Of a DNA stretch of 64,000 nt, positions 23,936 to 64,000 are shown piece by piece. The position numbers and the translations under genes were made by a program. Location of the stretch: sequence record OP752703.1; one strand, 5' to 3'. Each line of letters starts with the position of its first letter. The stretch's first letter is position 1. The notes under the pieces were generated by a model. It was not told where the DNA came from and searched no databases. It saw only the letters and a list, made by a program, of their open reading frames with translations.

Positions 23936-23988
23936 ATCATATCACTTGTGTTACAAAAAGCAAGAGGGACCAAAAGTCCCTCTTTTTT
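23936..23988 (-). promoter_or_regulatory. Terminator hairpin fused to an extended -10 promoter
   Basis: AAGAGGGAC-TTTTG-GTCCCTCTT, then TTGCTT-N16 (ending TGn)-TATGAT. Confidence 0.6.
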
Positions 23989-25336
23989 ATATTAATGCGG
24001 ATGTGATGTGGGGGATGAACGGATGCATCAATCGTAGTCGATGATCTAGCTTCGTTTTAGCTCTATCGATCCATTCCTGTTGATCGAACTTGCTCTTATT
24101 ACCCTGAATCCAAATGTTACAGAATTCACCCTTAAACTCGTTAAGGAGAAGGTTCATAGCCTCTTTGAGATTCATTTCCTGCATCAATTCTTCAAACTGT
24201 TCCTGTAGTTTGATATCATCCGATTCGAGTAGAGAATGATTACATGTTCCTTCATACTGTGACATTAGTCTTGCACAGCTATAAATTTTCTGCAAATTCT
24301 TCTTACCTTGGTCGAGGATGCCCATGTTGAACTTTGAATCCATACCCATTTCAATACCATTAGTGCAATAGATTCGGATGGCGTCAATTCCATGACTTTC
24401 CATCAAATCTAAAGGATCAATGCCGTTGCCTAGGGATTTGGAGAACTTGATATTGTTCTTGTCACGTAGAAGACCGTGTAGAAGAATATACTTGAACGTA
24501 TACTTTCCAGTTAGAAACTTCCCGATCATCAACATTCTTGCTGCCCAAAAATACAGAATATCATAGCCAGTTTCTAGAATGTCGTGACCTTCACCACTTC
24601 GATCTGTAGCGATAGCCCACAGGGAGCTAGTGAACCATGTATCAAACGTCAACTCTTCACCGGGAATGTTGATACCCCAATGAATGTCTCTAGCAATGTC
24701 CCAATCCTGATGATGACGTAGCATCTTCAATAGACGATTCTTATGAGATTCGCTACTGATGATGATTTCTCCACTGTCAATAGCGTCAGCTAGATCGGTG
24801 GCTTCATCATTAAGAGTTAGGAAGTACGAGCCATCCTTCTTGTAAATCTTTCCAGCGTCATTCAATTTATGGAACGTACTGATCGTCAATTCCTTGAACT
24901 TATCATCCAAAGTATAGTTGATGCTGTCCCAATCACAGGCAATGCCCATTTCTTTGAATTGAGTTAGGATTGTATTACGGTTAGAGGTAGCCAGTTCATG
25001 ACCACATTCAAGGTAGGTTTCTTTGGTGTATTCAGGGAGTTTCTGTATAATCTTTTCATGCGTAGCTAGGCCAGCATGGTCCAGACCCGGAAGCCAATGT
25101 GTATTAGTTCCACGCTGTGCGTAGAATCGAATTAGAGTGTCTTGAATGCTTAGGAAGATCGCATGCCCAAGATGCAATTGTCCCGTGATATTTGGGGGCG
25201 GCATTGGGATGGAATAGTGTTGTTTGTTGATGTTCGATTTGATTTGAGGAATGAAGTTCTTCGCTTCGTCTCCCCAATAGTTCTTAATTTCACGCTCAGT
25301 CTCAGTGTGATTATAGTGCTTACTTTCAAAGGTCAT
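23987..25336 (-). CDS. valS: Minimal valyl-tRNA synthetase-like protein (no CP1 editing domain, no C-terminal coiled coil)
   Basis: PPPNITGQLHLGH (HIGH), LPGLDHAGLAT, DW.I.R..WG..IP, FDTWFTSSLW, TGYDILYFWAARM, KFSKSLGN (KMSKS), LMHPFIPHIT; only 449 aa. Confidence 0.88.
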   Translation of the reverse strand: MTFESKHYNHTETEREIKNYWGDEAKNFIPQIKSNINKQHYSIPMPPPNITGQLHLGHAIFLSIQDTLIRFYAQRGTNTHWLPGLDHAGLATHEKIIQKLPEYTKETYLECGHELATSNRNTILTQFKEMGIACDWDSINYTLDDKFKELTISTFHKLNDAGKIYKKDGSYFLTLNDEATDLADAIDSGEIIISSESHKNRLLKMLRHHQDWDIARDIHWGINIPGEELTFDTWFTSSLWAIATDRSGEGHDILETGYDILYFWAARMLMIGKFLTGKYTFKYILLHGLLRDKNNIKFSKSLGNGIDPLDLMESHGIDAIRIYCTNGIEMGMDSKFNMGILDQGKKNLQKIYSCARLMSQYEGTCNHSLLESDDIKLQEQFEELMQEMNLKEAMNLLLNEFKGEFCNIWIQGNKSKFDQQEWIDRAKTKLDHRLRLMHPFIPHITSALI

Positions 25337-25396
25337 ACGTTTAACGGTGACATAGCATCCTCCTATTAGTTTGTGATGTGTCGTTGTTACGGGTTA

Positions 25397-25446
25397 AGTA
25401 TATCACTGTATTTAGAAAAAGCAAGAGGGGCTTTCGCCCCTCTTTC
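25397..25446 (-). promoter_or_regulatory. Terminator hairpin fused to an extended -10 promoter, with a CTAAATA box in the spacer
   Basis: AAGAGGGGC-GAAA-GCCCCTCTT, then TTGCTT-N16-TATACT. Confidence 0.6.
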
Positions 25447-26060: not shown

Positions 26061-26314
26061 GCTGTTTCCTTTGATTTGTTTAATTCATTCCAAGCTTTCA
26101 GTGCTTCATACTCTTCTTCGGTGTTGTAAAAACGATCCATAAAAGGTTTGACGTATTCAGTTATAGCATCACGTTCCTTTTTAGTCATTTCATCACACCA
26201 TATATCAGTTAACTGTGTACGAAATAAATCAGATTCTTCGATAGTTTCGCATAGAGCTTCCTGCATCCAGATAGTTACGTATTTGAAAATGATTTCTCTG
26301 TTCATAATACTCAC
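26057..26314 (-). CDS. Hypothetical protein
   Basis: 85-aa ORF with translational-coupling overlaps. Confidence 0.55.
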   Translation of the reverse strand: MSIMNREIIFKYVTIWMQEALCETIEESDLFRTQLTDIWCDEMTKKERDAITEYVKPFMDRFYNTEEEYEALKAWNELNKSKETA

Positions 26315-27171
26315 TTTAGAAGTTGAAAACGCTTGAATGCGTCTCGGTCTTTCCCAAACAACGGTTTACTGGCGATTGCGGTAAGCTGATTGCCGATATC
26401 CGGTTCTCGGAATTCCTCGAACTTTATACCACGTTCGCGTAGTTCTTCGCAACACTTTTGTAATTTAGCTTCGCTCTTGACCACACAGATGATGACCGAA
26501 GGGTGATTCGAATCTTTTGTGAGATAATTACGGGTAGATTCAATGATCGCATGACCAGATTGCACGGCTTTTTGAGCAGGCGATAGATCGTTGCGGACAA
26601 GGATATACATGTATTCGTGGTGGAAATACTTCTCTGCAATCTTCTTGGCGTTCTTAGACCACTTCTTGAACTTAATCTTGAAGGAATCAGATTCGATACC
26701 ACCGAAAAGGTTAGCGTTTGAGTGTAGTTCAGCCAGCGACACAAGCATAAGTGTTGCTAGTTGTTGTTTGGAAAGGTTTTGGTTAATGATTTGGTCAGCA
26801 GATAGCGTGTGGAAATCCATATCGTGAGCAATTAGCTCTCCGATTTCCTTACGTTCAGGGAATAGTTCATTCCATAGTTCATACGAACGAGCCGCATGAT
26901 TAGGGAAGTGACGCTTCCCATTGTCATCAATCTCTAGACAATCGGGCTTGCCGATATCATGGAAGATGCAATAGTGCTTGATGGTCTTAAAATCGTACAA
27001 GTTATTGTAGATTTCTTCTTCATAGTCAGTCCACCATTGCGGTAGCTGAAAACCATCATACTGCTTAGTTAGAAGTTTGCGGGCATAGTGCCACACCGAT
27101 AGACCGTGTTGAAGGATGGTCTGTCCCTTAGTTTGTTCTGTGTTCTTTAGCTTATTGAGGGTCTACTTCAT
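26311..27171 (-). CDS. HD-domain + PTH2-like (peptidyl-tRNA hydrolase II) fusion; in-frame TAG at codon 3
   Basis: AAGGA RBS then ATG AAG TAG ACC CTC.., in frame with QHGLSVW..FHDIGKP..HA..S..HDMDFH (HD) and YILVRNDLS..QKAVQSGHA..FREPDIGNQLTAIA (PTH2-like). Confidence 0.75.
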
Positions 27172-61100: not shown

Positions 61101-64000
61101 TCTGCTTAATTACAGTAGCACCCTTTAGGATGCGATTCATCAATTGCTGGCGAAGAGCCGGAGAGAATGCAACATCAATTTGGCGACCGTCATGGCCCGT
61201 TACGACATAAATGCCACGGGTAGAGTCAGCAACTAGGGTCGGCTTGACTGGCTTAATAACACCGAACTGAGGTAGTGAGGCAATCCAGTTGCGGATACCT
61301 ACATTCTTAGAAGAATCGTATGATGTAGAGTCACCGAACCACTGATCGTACTTACCGTTATTCTCTACCAATCCAACAATATCTGAGATAATAGTTGAAG
61401 TTAGTTCAGTGATGTTATCTACATCATCGTTGTTGAATAGATTTACGGCAGACTGGAAGAATCGATCCTTAACATAACGAATCTGAGATTCATACTGTAG
61501 CTTGGCGAATTCGATTACACGAACCGGATTACCATTGTTAACGAAAATAGAGGACACAAGAGTGTCGAAGCTTTCGTTATGCTCCTTGATTGTACCACCG
61601 ATACCGTAGTTAATTTCATCATCGATGAAGAATAGGTTACCGGTAGTGCTGAACATACCCGGCTGTTCCTGTAGATCAATGATCGACTTGAAGTGACGGT
61701 AAATCTGTGTTAGGTTGAATTCAGTGTAATTCTTATGGTCGATGTTATAGTACCACTGGTTTGGCATTTCCCACTGACCGTCAATCTTTACAGGACGGTA
61801 CATTTCATTGTGAGTTCCGCGCTTCCAAATGGTCTGTAGTTCATCGCCTACATTCTGGAAATCGTAGTAGCAGTATAGACGGCCAGACTCAGCGTCGCTC
61901 AATTCCTGAACGAAACTGTAATCATTACCATCAGTAACAACGCGTTTTAGAAGGATCGGGTTAACAACCGCGTCAGCAGATTCCTTATACTTAAAGATAG
62001 AGGTTGCGAACGGTAGACGGTTTCCGTAAATGTCGCGTAGAGAGAAGAATGGATACTGATTGGTTTCATTCTTAGTCTGTTCGATGCGACGGATGCCTAC
62101 TAGGTTCACTAGATCGCGGCCAGTCGGAGTCACAACCGAAACAGCACCTAGGCCGATTTCAGATTCAGCGTACTCGCCTAGCTCAACGCGGATAACGTCA
62201 TTCGGTTGAACAACGAAATCGTTGACGAAACGAATACCAGCAACGTAGTCTGGTGTCAAGTCTGACTGAATGTCTTCAAAGATACCGTACTTACGCTTAC
62301 CGTTGATGTAAACACGAATGTCGCCTTCCTGATAGTCATCGATTAGAACGATGTTCTGTAGGGAAGGGTCGAATACTAGAACCGCGTCCATTACTGGCTG
62401 CGAAGATTCTAGGCTATATTCCTGAGAAGTCAAGCCTACGATAGTTTCAAAGTCACCCACAACGTAGCTCTGGACATTAATGTCCAGCATTGGGTTCTTC
62501 TTTGGTTCTAAGCTCGATGCACTGATTTCTTTAACACCACCGTACTGCCACTGAGCAGCGCCTAGACCTAGGAAGGTATCACCGGCAGCGGTCTTAGCTG
62601 GCTGAATGGTCGCACCGAACGGTAGGTCAGCAGTCAAAGCTAGAGGGTTAGAGAAGCGTAGAGTTGTGACGAAACGTCCACCGGTTGCTGGCTGTGAGTA
62701 ATCAGTGCTGGCAATGGTGTAGTAACCATCGTTCTGTGCAAATCCTACAAGCTTAATATCTTCACCAGCTTTCAACTCTGAACCGAAGTTACCGTACTTA
62801 CTGTTGAAAGTAATGGTGTACGCGTCAACGATATCAAATTCATCGCCAGTGTAAGAAAAGTCTAGTAGTTCGATCATGCGCGGAGCAATGGTCGAATCAA
62901 CGTAGGCAGTGTTGTCAAGCTTACGGTATCTCCAAATCTTTTCAGAGTATGAAGTGTTTGACATTTCTAGGAACGGGAAGTATTCGATGATCGGAATCTG
63001 AGCGCGAACCATACCGCTGTATTCGGTGATCTGTGAACGATGTACCCAATGGTTGGTATCTGACCAATCATTATCATTTGAGTAATCGGAAACTGAACGA
63101 GATTCAATGGATTTCTCTAGAAGAGAAACGCCCTTATAAACCTGCTTCCACTCTGTACCCGTCCACTGTAGAAGTGAATCTGATAGTGGGTTGTAGGATA
63201 GCTGGAAGTCTTCCGGGTTTGATGGAAGTACAGTGTTGGTAATCAATTCTAGAGAGAACGGACGAACGATACGGTACGATAGGTCTTCACTTGTGAAGAA
63301 CGTTGTGTCCGTAGTCAAGGTCGAGCCATTAACTGCTACGATTCCATAAGAACCTTCATTCTTCTCACCATTACTGATGACGATCTTGTCGCCTACTTTA
63401 ACATTGTACTGTGAGAAGTCAATGCTTGTGTCAGTGAAATTAGAAGAGTTTAGAGTAGTCGATCCACTCGAACCTGATACGATTGCGTAGTAATTATACC
63501 ATAGAACCTGTCCAATGTGACTGTCACTCCATTCTTCGAAGAATAGAGAAGCGTATGGGTCTTCGGATACTTCGTGTTCTGCATTCATCATGTTGATTAG
63601 TGGGAACATCGAAACGTAAGAGTATGCACCAACAACTCCTTCTAGAGTTACTGATGTTACATTGGCTACAGCGTCGAAAGTGCTTGACAATACCTTGACA
63701 ACCTGAGTCACCGGGGTATCAACTGAAACCAAATATCCTTCTACTAGAAGGTTGGTGAAGTCACCACGTAGACGGGTTACACCATCACGAACCGTGATGA
63801 TCGGAATATCAATACTCGCCATATAGACTGAACTTTGGTCAGCCGGAATTGTGAACTCTTCCGATACGAAGATTTCAGTATTTGTAGTTGAAATATTATA
63901 TTGGATGTTGGTGATCGTCAATGGTACATTTGTACCATCTGGCTGGATCAATACAATGTGGCTACCGACCGGGTACTTACTGGCATTATTACCAGCAATA
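55162..64000 (-). CDS. Giant structural protein, probable baseplate wedge/hub; 5' partial; Pro/Thr tail
   Basis: Frame stays open from the TTG at 63951 to the window edge (>2940 codons); structural neighbourhood; ends PEPSPTPSPTPAAPTPSSTATPTPTP.. Confidence 0.7.
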   Translation of the reverse strand, partial: IAGNNASKYPVGSHIVLIQPDGTNVPLTITNIQYNISTTNTEIFVSEEFTIPADQSSVYMASIDIPIITVRDGVTRLRGDFTNLLVEGYLVSVDTPVTQVVKVLSSTFDAVANVTSVTLEGVVGAYSYVSMFPLINMMNAEHEVSEDPYASLFFEEWSDSHIGQVLWYNYYAIVSGSSGSTTLNSSNFTDTSIDFSQYNVKVGDKIVISNGEKNEGSYGIVAVNGSTLTTDTTFFTSEDLSYRIVRPFSLELITNTVLPSNPEDFQLSYNPLSDSLLQWTGTEWKQVYKGVSLLEKSIESRSVSDYSNDNDWSDTNHWVHRSQITEYSGMVRAQIPIIEYFPFLEMSNTSYSEKIWRYRKLDNTAYVDSTIAPRMIELLDFSYTGDEFDIVDAYTITFNSKYGNFGSELKAGEDIKLVGFAQNDGYYTIASTDYSQPATGGRFVTTLRFSNPLALTADLPFGATIQPAKTAAGDTFLGLGAAQWQYGGVKEISASSLEPKKNPMLDINVQSYVVGDFETIVGLTSQEYSLESSQPVMDAVLVFDPSLQNIVLIDDYQEGDIRVYINGKRKYGIFEDIQSDLTPDYVAGIRFVNDFVVQPNDVIRVELGEYAESEIGLGAVSVVTPTGRDLVNLVGIRRIEQTKNETNQYPFFSLRDIYGNRLPFATSIFKYKESADAVVNPILLKRVVTDGNDYSFVQELSDAESGRLYCYYDFQNVGDELQTIWKRGTHNEMYRPVKIDGQWEMPNQWYYNIDHKNYTEFNLTQIYRHFKSIIDLQEQPGMFSTTGNLFFIDDEINYGIGGTIKEHNESFDTLVSSIFVNNGNPVRVIEFAKLQYESQIRYVKDRFFQSAVNLFNNDDVDNITELTSTIISDIVGLVENNGKYDQWFGDSTSYDSSKNVGIRNWIASLPQFGVIKPVKPTLVADSTRGIYVVTGHDGRQIDVAFSPALRQQLMNRILKGATVIKQIVNSENESFPSVYEGKPIYNGLLLQRINRTANTITLYRASTNLTWERMDINAIFAQTVLDIETRLYDVSVAEDRTNEYNFEALKSNPDYESLMEAQFNAYALSEHIDQPLSNADRFRQNNPFTWNYAYTPIKVDPVTGGVNYDVAGTWQALYENVFGTAYPHLEPWILQGYTSEPTWWAETYNDTSNTRRWNRQMWTNIFSGIVPSGRATPSGDISTGTAGTISKRFAYLPVNTSITVTSDGYGLDAILPPYWNSANTTDARVRGLYDPNSSEFVTTPNADFTFGQDGLTEWEWKNSGAYLYDQLIVAYMLDPMKFMHSLIGVDYHLVSCLQISTETEKVYSHRDIIFHGDFIDAENDIYRSFGLNQWYVHYNRYAGYDGIASEFRSLWRDWTPDLSYLVGAFIDTSSFSIHNDYFDITNKDYEIAIKKTKGISDKWLQSLEAVVTSIPSQYSKLRDQGIGWTASFNNVSPIARQMEYYGVQNYSVNMNRGDNTIRTFSYPLTGVVYTPSTSVVNVIYNQPLSLSSETNMVIDEEYDVSITFNGTDTVTAIINGVATVEEFLYALNFEIKDFGRAAIDNGTIAVYSNDTTADSSVDITEPDAFMAVATFDSMTPSSVINNDFKKCFRIAGNFINVFESQTQVIITDDAIFNGTYTIDRLFYDQNEMETFIFVKEDITVPTLGPITVTGVIEPANAITLPEEWVTGTMIYFNTTGYLPTGIDDEIPYFVIRIDDRTFKIAETAEAAAIGIAMSINGTALGEAYAGRLEMTFTALGGVKTDYVWRTHHVDTRYVLKANNLSISGIQLMIDFLTGYAAYTNAQGFQFKNENADNYDRVTGMNNNWHTEIEKFVNWLYALRNYNQEAMQSYSVTSTGFDNSITMVDGTIPNWQNGTAIIILQEGNNKLPAAFDTPFTASIPYYVVRNANDNTSFKLAVTKADALRGNTIEIGASAGNFRVQMYKDIAQFPSHEINPFKHYVWVQHAQGVLGNVLDEDYTDPTSASRLYDNTLLELPVSDVLVYRQDKESRISLTGDIRDSNNIAEINGRPTHHMAGMHLFFDGYEHIIHFNDYSVSGSLIYDSFFGLATPRFYVEFDRQQNFTLRPNVGGFVIQGDSLVQNLESVTNDMRYFYDATNAAEGRLATELARKSMGYDGPKDYMNSLKINAKTQFQFWQGMIQSKGSIRSVDAFVNQSRFESADVDEFWAYKVAEFGDNNERNHLEMKLIPDDAVRNELRLEFVAPENVAPDLTFKSIQLTDMSRWWNQPDQLQAMAPNQSFFFNTKVIGLDTNVSDKVMVVSDKLIYLSETIMPNVILTYFDRNEGVVKTMIRDIDYKIINSYIIEFITDPRGLYNVTLNVLTYDYESHNPAKVIDKVSGVVTTELPIWHPAFGQYYTPAYAVVDLNRPVDPAIYNVSLDGSNTGTALWKGNHEGQVWMDSSNEDYVPYYDQNVMRNINNRISVWGKLAPWAGIKLYQWTSSILTPEEYDEQSAKDAQNLRLPNNDKVTGTVYKRLYENIKFQDPDDVDAPPYWVEVLPTNIKFIAGLYEESITALQGKTVDLYINGVFIENMTFENGGAVKAYFEDMYFGNYINAIIPLPVPTAEEIRLQKYRWFTPHTIEKRFDSKSGEIFNRYYYWVTEKKNDISVGTNITTIYTSQKMLNDMSAPYMICAGFRTPEFGYGLLFGNIFDEYGYDLPYRYTQAIIRGLQGTVKEENRYVIRFTRDFTLRDTLDRATMTPKNRHEEWKLFREKQFEKVDSYLWNKMVEALIGYRLNSANEIELTKQIPSLNRILYDQLFQADTQFGLGDQQVFTDKELSLRTIMQFLTDPTREFEFVSIPEFLDNNDFNTPQGIVAAMTAIYQGFSVSEVNALYFAVLHDAISLKKEYGDFLKTSWVALQISENVQESVNVPYDELRLVEGPGCEVAPPEPSPTPSPTPAAPTPSSTATPTPTPSSTITPTPTPSATPVIVNDDLWNVLIFPSN

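Follow-up and report, generated by a model that had tools for sequence, protein, structure and literature searches.

Why should a bacteriophage encode a valyl-tRNA synthetase (ValRS) of half the usual size, without a single valine, from a gene whose only Shine-Dalgarno (SD) sequence is placed for a different reading frame? The question is raised by a gene on the minus strand of a 64,000-nucleotide (nt) stretch of the Stenotrophomonas maltophilia jumbo phage RAS14 (OP752703; sequence record OP752703.1), here called the window, its base 1 being base 62001 of RAS14. The gene, annotated in GenBank as valyl-tRNA synthetase in RAS14, is 100% identical in the S. maltophilia jumbo phage CM1 (OP883945), both genomes being 319 kb in size; it is referred to below as mini-valS and its product as mini-ValRS. 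The reading favoured here, which we hold to be probable, if well short of certain, is that mini-ValRS is a functional minimal ValRS that would act as a starvation-proof backup and would be turned on by a -1 frameshift in a short leader when charged Val-tRNA is scarce.

The identity of the enzyme is evident from several comparisons. In Pfam, mini-ValRS matches tRNA-synt_1 (2e-62) and Anticodon_1 (37 bits, cutoff 25.1), and among the NCBIfam models the ValRS equivalogs NF004349 and TIGR00422 rank first with 314 and 285 bits, ahead of the isoleucyl enzyme (IleRS, ileS) at 136 bits; the respective equivalog cutoffs of 704 and 612 bits are missed because half of the protein is absent. A search of the Protein Data Bank (PDB) returns Thermus thermophilus ValRS (1GAX) at 1.5e-53, followed by an IleRS at 4.8e-22, and the match to ValRS is far beyond chance. 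Alignment to 1GAX resolves the protein into three collinear blocks (query 20-165 on chain 15-167, 172-226 on 360-414, and 227-448 on 449-690), which leave the CP1 editing domain of about 192 residues (chain 168-359) without a counterpart and skip a further 34 residues (chain 415-448), and the protein ends at the equivalent of chain position ~691 of 862, with the stem-contact domain and the coiled coil gone. An earlier note, made from the letters of this DNA alone, had described a half-size ValRS with all catalytic motifs in place, a direct join near 24835 instead of the editing domain and no C-terminal coiled coil, and the alignment bears out this description, with the HLGH and KFSKS motifs present and the join located at the positions given in Table 1. 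The T. thermophilus residues P41, P42, N44, D81, W456, I491 and W495, reportedly those of the valine pocket (Fukai et al. 2000), have P46, P47, N49, D86, W234, I260 and W264 as counterparts in mini-ValRS, and across the family each of these either never varies or is conserved above 90%. With the pocket intact, nothing supports the dedicated threonine-charging role that had also been suggested, while an error-tolerant enzyme, another of the earlier suggestions, is plausible given the loss of CP1.

The structural model leads to the same view. An AlphaFold2 (AF2) model built on 56 relatives has a predicted local distance difference test score (pLDDT) of 94.7 and a predicted TM-score (pTM) of 0.93, and superposes on 1GAX_A with a Z score of 38.4 and a root-mean-square deviation of 2.3 Å, 438 of the 449 residues being aligned to chain 1-691 at 32% identity; its anticodon domain consists of five helices (residues 338-448) and aligns to the 1GAX chain up to position 691. 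Mini-ValRS is an intact ValRS core with a Rossmann fold and a helix-bundle anticodon domain, and without an editing domain. It shares with the T. thermophilus enzyme the catalytic Rossmann core, the HIGH and KMSKS motifs, the Val-pocket residues and the helix bundle, whereas it differs from canonical ValRS in lacking CP1, the 34-residue insert, the stem-contact domain, the coiled coil and valine itself, and in having a frameshift-type leader. The same domain set and size occur in Aquifex aeolicus MetRS (PDB 2CT8/2CSX, solved with tRNA-Met), which matches the model with a Z score of 33.3 and 397 residues over nearly the whole of its 465-residue chain; such an architecture can therefore bind and charge tRNA through the anticodon, although MetRS has another amino-acid specificity and never had a CP1 domain to lose. 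Natural loss of the editing domain within class Ia has a parallel in the LeuRS of Mycoplasma mobile (PDB 3ZIU), with a Foldseek TM-score of 0.78 to the AF2 model. That CP1-less enzyme, however, is reportedly the only LeuRS of its cell, and it is not known to have a recoding leader or to be depleted of leucine.

The composition of mini-ValRS is unusual. Not one valine is found among its 449 residues and no GTN codon in its frame, while phage open reading frames (ORFs) of at least 250 residues average 6.7% valine, and the chance of zero valines is about e^-31. The property extends to the family: when valines are counted from the PPPN motif onward in 143 clusters, there are none in 119 clusters, one in 12, two in 7 and three in 2, and among the 28 short representatives that remain after clustering at 50%, 16 are valine-free, compared with 6-9% valine in full-length ValRS. 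P0004 and P0005, the main exceptions, contain 13 and 11 valines, respectively. They branch as the closest outgroup to the pair formed by the CM1 protein and P0003, and have their own ATG, a consensus promoter and no leader; a clade that lost the leader and regained valines is an exception that fits the reading favoured here. Some valine-poor relatives have C-terminal extensions, and one of 891 residues seems, by alignment ranges, to keep CP1. Strong depletion (0.2-1.9% valine) is also seen in the longer relatives P0204, P0151, P0163, P0167 and P0273, of 687-933 residues, and since one of the longer relatives apparently retains a CP1-sized insert, depletion of valine is not tied to the mini architecture.

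Other synthetase-like genes lack their cognate amino acid as well. The megaphage LR745206 (635 kb) encodes an independently derived, type-2 mini-ValRS (L002:4079-5410; 443 residues, TPPPTISG motif), which is also valine-free and has its own ATG and no leader. Contig L188, which also bears a mini-ValRS, encodes a 325-residue GluRS-like protein without glutamate (L188:1394-2371), with its own start and no leader, and a partial class II protein (2b/HGTP, ThrRS-like) with 0 threonine in 343 residues (L188:16304-17335). Cognate-free GluRS-like, ThrRS-like and type-2 mini-ValRS genes thus occur without the leader.

The gene is under strong purifying selection. In a comparison with its counterpart on contig L107, which comes from a related phage and is 91% identical, the ratio of non-synonymous to synonymous substitution rates (dN/dS) is 0.047 with synonymous sites near saturation, so the erosion of homologs that the earlier note had considered as a sign of pseudogenisation is clearly absent. 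That note had also called for a search for homologs of the same architecture and for a phage tRNA-Val, and both exist: a tRNA-Val(UAC) is encoded by the phage, and a length-limited word search gives 2,990 matches at E <= 1e-5, the top ones of about 440-580 residues and of the same architecture. In the tree, the mini-ValRS family is monophyletic (SH-aLRT 96) and sister to the sampled full-length type-1 ValRS, with the phage protein nested deep in it beside P0003 and P0004; CP1 was therefore lost once, in the ancestor of the family. P0003 (L108:4132-5874), the closest non-phage relative with 68% identity, lies beside a gene for a HipA_C kinase and a small ORF upstream, with AbiEii, RMF and SprT-like genes nearby, which may indicate a toxin or defence island. 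Further members lie on AT-rich contigs of 1.07-1.9 Mb (L083, L084, L105, L106 and L129), where the neighbouring genes are mostly small, co-oriented and without a Pfam match, a few having ankyrin, T4 Y00F or Na/H exchanger domains; some of the long AT-rich contigs of the family encode RpoD, CdsA/PlsC and ankyrin proteins. The very long contigs may stem from reduced bacteria or from giant mobile elements. A scan of genome contigs with the family alignment returned predominantly ordinary full-length ValRS, among the PLSDB plasmids searched only full-length ValRS was found, and a protein search of IMG/VR for mini-ValRS gave chance matches only.

How is such a gene translated? The sole SD sequence upstream serves the ATG of a leader mini-ORF in the +1 frame and not the ATG of ValRS. 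The leader recurs nearly letter for letter in all ten of ten relatives picked by protein alone, despite protein identities of 37-91% and DNA of 24-55% G+C, and a pattern scan of JGI metagenomes yields about 50 further leader loci. In most AT-rich loci, designated type A, the ValRS frame is open from the element with an in-frame stop just upstream, and no ATG, GTG or TTG occurs until the internal methionine of MPPPN, from which 95 of 143 family proteins have been called. In the AF2 model, the 44 residues before that methionine belong to the folded Rossmann domain and supply its first strand. Because the SD sequence fits only the out-of-frame ATG and most relatives lack an in-frame start, a -1 shift within the first six codons is the simplest route into the gene. 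An alternative N-terminal peptide 'GGCYVTVKR' was rejected, since stops lie directly upstream in most type-A loci and no near-cognate start is found inside the element; it would also bring two valines into an otherwise valine-free protein.

The position of the shift can be narrowed by the distribution of valine codons. In 27 distinct loci, the last three ValRS-frame codons ahead of the slip motif (AAA/GGA) include one or two for valine, and only 5 valines occur in the 12,094 residues after it. Since the leader frame, in turn, has its Val codon directly after AAC, a valine-free product requires the switch to take place within A_AAC (25342-25339). In GC-rich relatives A_AAC is replaced by G_GAC, never by a mixed form, and the ValRS-frame residue at this place is K (AAA) or G (GGA) only, never E or R, as expected if the P-site tRNA (Asn or Asp) had to re-pair its first two bases one position back. 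The sensor codon of valS leaders may be GTA, GTG, GTT or GTC, and a Leu codon, TTA or TTG, precedes the motif in all Val leaders in which the search left that codon free; a synonymous constraint on ACN in the -1 frame was considered and dropped, since ATC and ATT variants exist. In L193, where the leader starts far upstream, an SD-like GGAGGG stands 10 nt before G_TTG_GAC GTC TGA with no ATG after it. According to a 2016 recoding review (PMC5009743), SD-like stimulators of -1 shifts act from 9-14 nt upstream, and the spacing of 12-13 nt in the window and 10 nt in L193 therefore fits this rule. The review also describes slow, 'hungry' A-site codons as promoting slippage where re-pairing is possible.

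Under the favoured reading, ribosomes would load at the sole SD site and begin the leader peptide M-S-P-L-N-V in the +1 frame. With ample charged Val-tRNA, GUA would be decoded and translation would terminate; with scarce Val-tRNA, the ribosome would pause, its P site on AAC and its A site unfilled at GUA, and the peptidyl-tRNA(Asn) could slip one base back on A_AAC, aided by the upstream SD-like pairing, into the ValRS frame, giving a trans-frame product that would begin M-S-P-L-N-R-M-T-F. In CM1, the ATG overlapping the leader stop would also permit termination-reinitiation. The valine-free enzyme could then be translated even with Val-tRNA(Val) exhausted, and would recharge tRNA-Val, including the phage tRNA-Val(UAC), until charging is restored and the switch is shut. 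A ValRS without editing should allow some Thr-for-Val errors, which would presumably be tolerable in an emergency enzyme. Directly visible are the domain architecture and its conservation, the absence of valine, the conserved leader, the missing start codons of relatives and the codon swap in alanine systems described next; from these we infer that the enzyme activates valine and charges tRNA, that the ribosome shifts frame and that the shift responds to Val-tRNA.

The strongest support for position 6 of the leader as a sensor of the cognate charged tRNA comes from a swap of this codon from Val to Ala. Directly after mini-valS, the sister phage contig L107 contains an AlaRS-like gene (L107:7219-8193, PF01411) with one alanine in 253 residues, whose leader has the same SD-ATG-TCA-CCG beginning and carries GCA at position 6 (upstream ORF MSPRQAI-stop), and whose open -1 frame offers its first start only at an internal methionine; no counterpart of this gene was found in the window. 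A pattern in which position 6 and the Leu codon were both free yielded 17 jumbo-phage loci in IMG/VR, all reading CTA AAC GCN. Four of these leaders (L198, L203, L207 and L209) precede AlaRS-like genes of 276-297 residues with 0, 5, 0 and 2 alanines, respectively. Overall, AlaRS-like leaders use GCA, GCG or GCC as the sensor codon before genes with 0-5 alanines, and the Leu position is CTA in 17 of 19 Ala leaders and CGC in the other two.

The Val leader also precedes type-2 valS genes that are full-length, contain valine and lie on the other side of the root of the ValRS tree; its occurrence before such distantly related valS types indicates that it is tied to the function 'valS' and does not follow the ancestry of the coding sequence. 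Among the roles that the earlier note had listed, a backup against shutdown of host tRNAs or aminoacyl-tRNA synthetases is thus the favoured one, in view of the valine-free protein and of a Val-codon leader shared with other valS genes. In GC-rich bacterial contigs (L154:2405-2795; L137, L144, L147, L148, L158, L163, L167 and L171), a stretch of 180-450 nt separates the leader from a downstream full-length type-2 valS that starts with ATG, and the frames of the two vary. The spacer shows nucleotide-level conservation broken by indels and looks like a structured regulatory RNA, without an Rfam match. As to the nature of the leader itself, a T-box or another curated RNA was ruled out, since Rfam at gathering thresholds gives no family in ten leader-bearing loci. 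Two Val-leader DNA patterns gave only chance matches in IMG/VR, so Val-type leaders are not in that collection; the leader pattern was not found in 401 sampled genomes of one phylum (Pseudomonadota), and among GenBank phages only CM1 and RAS14 have it.

The wider proposal that phages and uncultured bacteria share a system of 'self-starting' cognate-free synthetases, gated by a -1 slip leader at one cognate codon, seems to us about evenly poised; candidate members are seen for valine (mini and full-length valS) and for alanine (AlaRS-like).

Several observations weigh against a frameshift-gated backup enzyme. A_AAC and G_GAC preserve two of three pairs for the P-site tRNA and are not a canonical X_XXY_YYZ heptamer; in a tandem slip the P-site tRNA would re-pair poorly, and C_CAA of the second Ala type re-pairs less well. 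According to the 2016 review, hungry A sites are of greater importance to +1 shifts than to -1 shifts. In 55 loci, neither a conserved nor an unusually stable hairpin was found in the 60 nt after the slip site. In the bacterial contigs with a distant leader, its action must be indirect. The conserved proteins of 105-130 residues that follow ten of the Ala leaders in the -1 frame (L197, L202, L204, L205, L208 and L210-L214; no Pfam match) have 0-6 alanines and, as a family, are not alanine-free. Loss of the C-terminal tRNA-binding domains, moreover, may cripple charging by the enzyme. Two further difficulties, the start codon of the window copy and a second cognate codon in each leader, lead directly to the alternatives considered next.

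The window copy has a ValRS-frame ATG at 25336, and a frameshift is not strictly required there. On this basis mini-ValRS could be a constitutive auxiliary ValRS without sensing, made in CM1 from that ATG by termination-reinitiation and adding charging capacity for tRNA-Val(UAC), with the leader as a coupling device or relic. The ATGA overlap between the ValRS start and the leader stop would suit this account, as would the possession of tRNA-Val(UAC) by a phage that makes heavy use of GUA. However, the ATG is not kept, being ATA in the 91%-identical copy of L107 and absent in nearly all relatives, and constitutive expression leaves unexplained the valine-free composition, the exact change from a Val-containing to a Val-free frame at the slip motif, and the exchange of Val for Ala codons in the AlaRS-like leaders. 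We regard this alternative as rather unlikely.

The second difficulty is another cognate codon that every leader carries 7 nt before the sensor and in the ValRS (-1) frame, which the simple model does not explain. The two codons are GTT and GTN in Val leaders, and GCT or GCG and GCN in Ala leaders, always exactly 7 nt apart and one per frame, and in every case the tRNA for the sensor codon could also pair with its upstream partner. The same backup enzyme might accordingly be reached by another form of recoding, either by backward re-pairing over 7 nt from GUA to GUU or by a -1 state locked by deacylated tRNA-Val on an E-site GUU. A backward hop, however, needs charged Val-tRNA, the opposite of what a valine-free product suggests, and a stop does not consistently follow the sensor; documented backward shifts are not known to exceed 1-2 nt. 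Such a mechanism appears distinctly unlikely.

Very unlikely, in our judgement, is a non-translational enzyme, whether a supplier of valyl-adenylate, as the earlier note had also suggested, or a tRNA-independent or Thr-charging enzyme. Truncated synthetase paralogs with other jobs do exist, and the absence of the editing and C-terminal tRNA-binding domains would agree with such a role. The anticodon-binding helix bundle, however, is kept and conserved, the overall architecture equals that of a minimal MetRS able to charge tRNA, the Val pocket has not changed, the neighbourhood contains no biosynthetic partner genes, and the leader, which is built around a Val codon and occurs on genuine full-length valS genes as well, points to a regulatory logic directed at the supply of Val-tRNA; nothing was found in support of an adenylate supplier. 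As for a decaying fragment or pseudogene, for which only half the normal size speaks, its probability is negligible, the idea being already refuted by the conservation data (dN/dS, the monophyletic family of uniform architecture and its 2,990 matches), by the pLDDT of the model and by the gene's own flanking terminator-like hairpins.

The phage context agrees with an enzyme for Val-tRNA supply. About 29 tRNA genes are present, including the tRNA-Val(UAC) with A35, C36 and A73, and GUA, at 38%, is the commonest Val codon in long phage ORFs; no other synthetase was found in the phage among the aminoacyl-tRNA synthetase families searched. The Stenotrophomonas host is GC-rich (66% GC), and its tRNA-Val isoacceptor for GUA is probably scarce. 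The RAS14 tRNA cluster (L102-L103, outside the window) also contains two suppressor-like tRNAs with anticodons TTA and CTA. The features of the locus are collected in Table 1. The terminator-like hairpin that ends the upstream gene implies that mini-valS is its own transcription unit. Three genes upstream of mini-valS, a 261-residue protein has an HD-like N-terminal part (phrog_14850) and a C-terminal part with a weak match to peptidyl-tRNA hydrolase 2 (PTH2; E 2.6e-4, just under the Pfam cutoff), and may represent another tRNA-related function.

Table 1. Positions of the mini-valS gene, its leader and associated signals in the window.
Feature	Positions	Strand	Details
Mini-ValRS frame from own ATG	23987-25336	minus	449 residues, stop included in positions; no Val codon, no CP1, no C-terminal stem-contact or coiled-coil domains
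HIGH motif (HLGH)	25163-25174	minus	Residues 55-58; sequence and 1GAX alignment
CP1 excision join	24824-24841	minus	Residues 166-171, KKDGSY; tight turn between strands 164-167 and 170-173 in the model
KMSKS motif (KFSKS)	24434-24448	minus	Residues 297-301; sequence and 1GAX alignment
Shine-Dalgarno GGAGGA	25358-25363	minus	4 bases between it and the leader ATG (5 counted from GGAGG); 12-13 nt upstream of G_TTA_AAC
Leader mini-ORF ATG TCA CCG TTA AAC GTA TGA	25333-25353	minus	M-S-P-L-N-V-stop; +1 to the ValRS frame; stop overlaps the ValRS ATG (ATGA)
GTT, Val codon in ValRS frame	25343-25345	minus	Just 5' of the slip motif; last Val codon of that frame before 449 Val-less codons
Candidate -1 slip motif A_AAC	25339-25342	minus	P-site tRNA-Asn would re-pair from AAC to AAA
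Putative sensor codon GTA (Val), leader frame	25336-25338	minus	Directly 3' of the slip motif; read by phage tRNA-Val(UAC)
Candidate sigma-70-type promoter	25397-25424	minus	TTGCTT, 16 nt, TGnTATACT; by eye, below scan threshold
Intrinsic-terminator-like hairpin ending upstream gene	25423-25444	minus	Hairpin scan
Terminator-like hairpin after ValRS	23962-23984	minus	3 nt after the ValRS stop; hairpin scan; scores on plus strand too
HD-like/PTH2-like protein gene	26311-27096	minus	

The proposed switch resembles several known systems without coinciding with any of them. As in the +1 frameshift of RF2 (prfB), the recoding site holds a codon whose decoding would hinge on the gene's own product, and an SD-like stimulator is nearby (PMC5009743); it differs in that the shift would be -1, an aminoacyl-tRNA would read the proposed sensor, a sense codon in place of a stop, and the site lies within the first six codons, so that the SD sequence also serves initiation. 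With frameshifting of the dnaX type it has in common the -1 direction and an SD-like element 9-14 nt upstream (PMC5009743), whereas the A_AAA_AAG heptamer and the downstream hairpin are absent here, and the outcome would be the presence or absence of a whole protein instead of two products. Leader-peptide attenuation and T-boxes also sense cognate tRNA charging through a short leader; here, by contrast, there is a single control codon and a change of reading frame in place of a terminator/antiterminator decision, and no Rfam match. Phage intervention specifically at valyl-tRNA charging is known from phage T4, whose small vs protein modifies the host ValRS, whereas the present phages bring an enzyme of their own. 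The literature searched, whose coverage was incomplete so that earlier work is possible, contained no description of a valine-free ValRS, a frameshift-gated synthetase gene or the phages RAS14 and CM1, and the 2016 recoding review, in the 300,000 characters searched, does not mention tRNA synthetases.

If this reading is correct, it would have consequences for annotation, since most family members would have been mis-called from an internal methionine because the true start needs recoding, and for synthetic biology, to which the leader would offer a portable part of 30 nt with which the charging of a chosen tRNA might be monitored. Mini-ValRS would also provide a second natural editing-less class Ia enzyme for the study of tolerated mistranslation. 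One hungry codon and a slip motif would constitute a compact sensor of tRNA charging and thus a new form of aminoacyl-tRNA synthetase gene regulation beside T-boxes, attenuators and operator mimicry, as well as the first sense-codon counterpart, and a natural one, of RF2 autoregulation. More generally, a synthetase could be built independently of its own product, which would solve the chicken-and-egg problem of remaking the enzyme once that product is exhausted. For the phages themselves, this would supply a rationale for encoding a synthetase, by which their own tRNA for an A-ending codon would be kept charged in a GC-rich host or under host shutdown.

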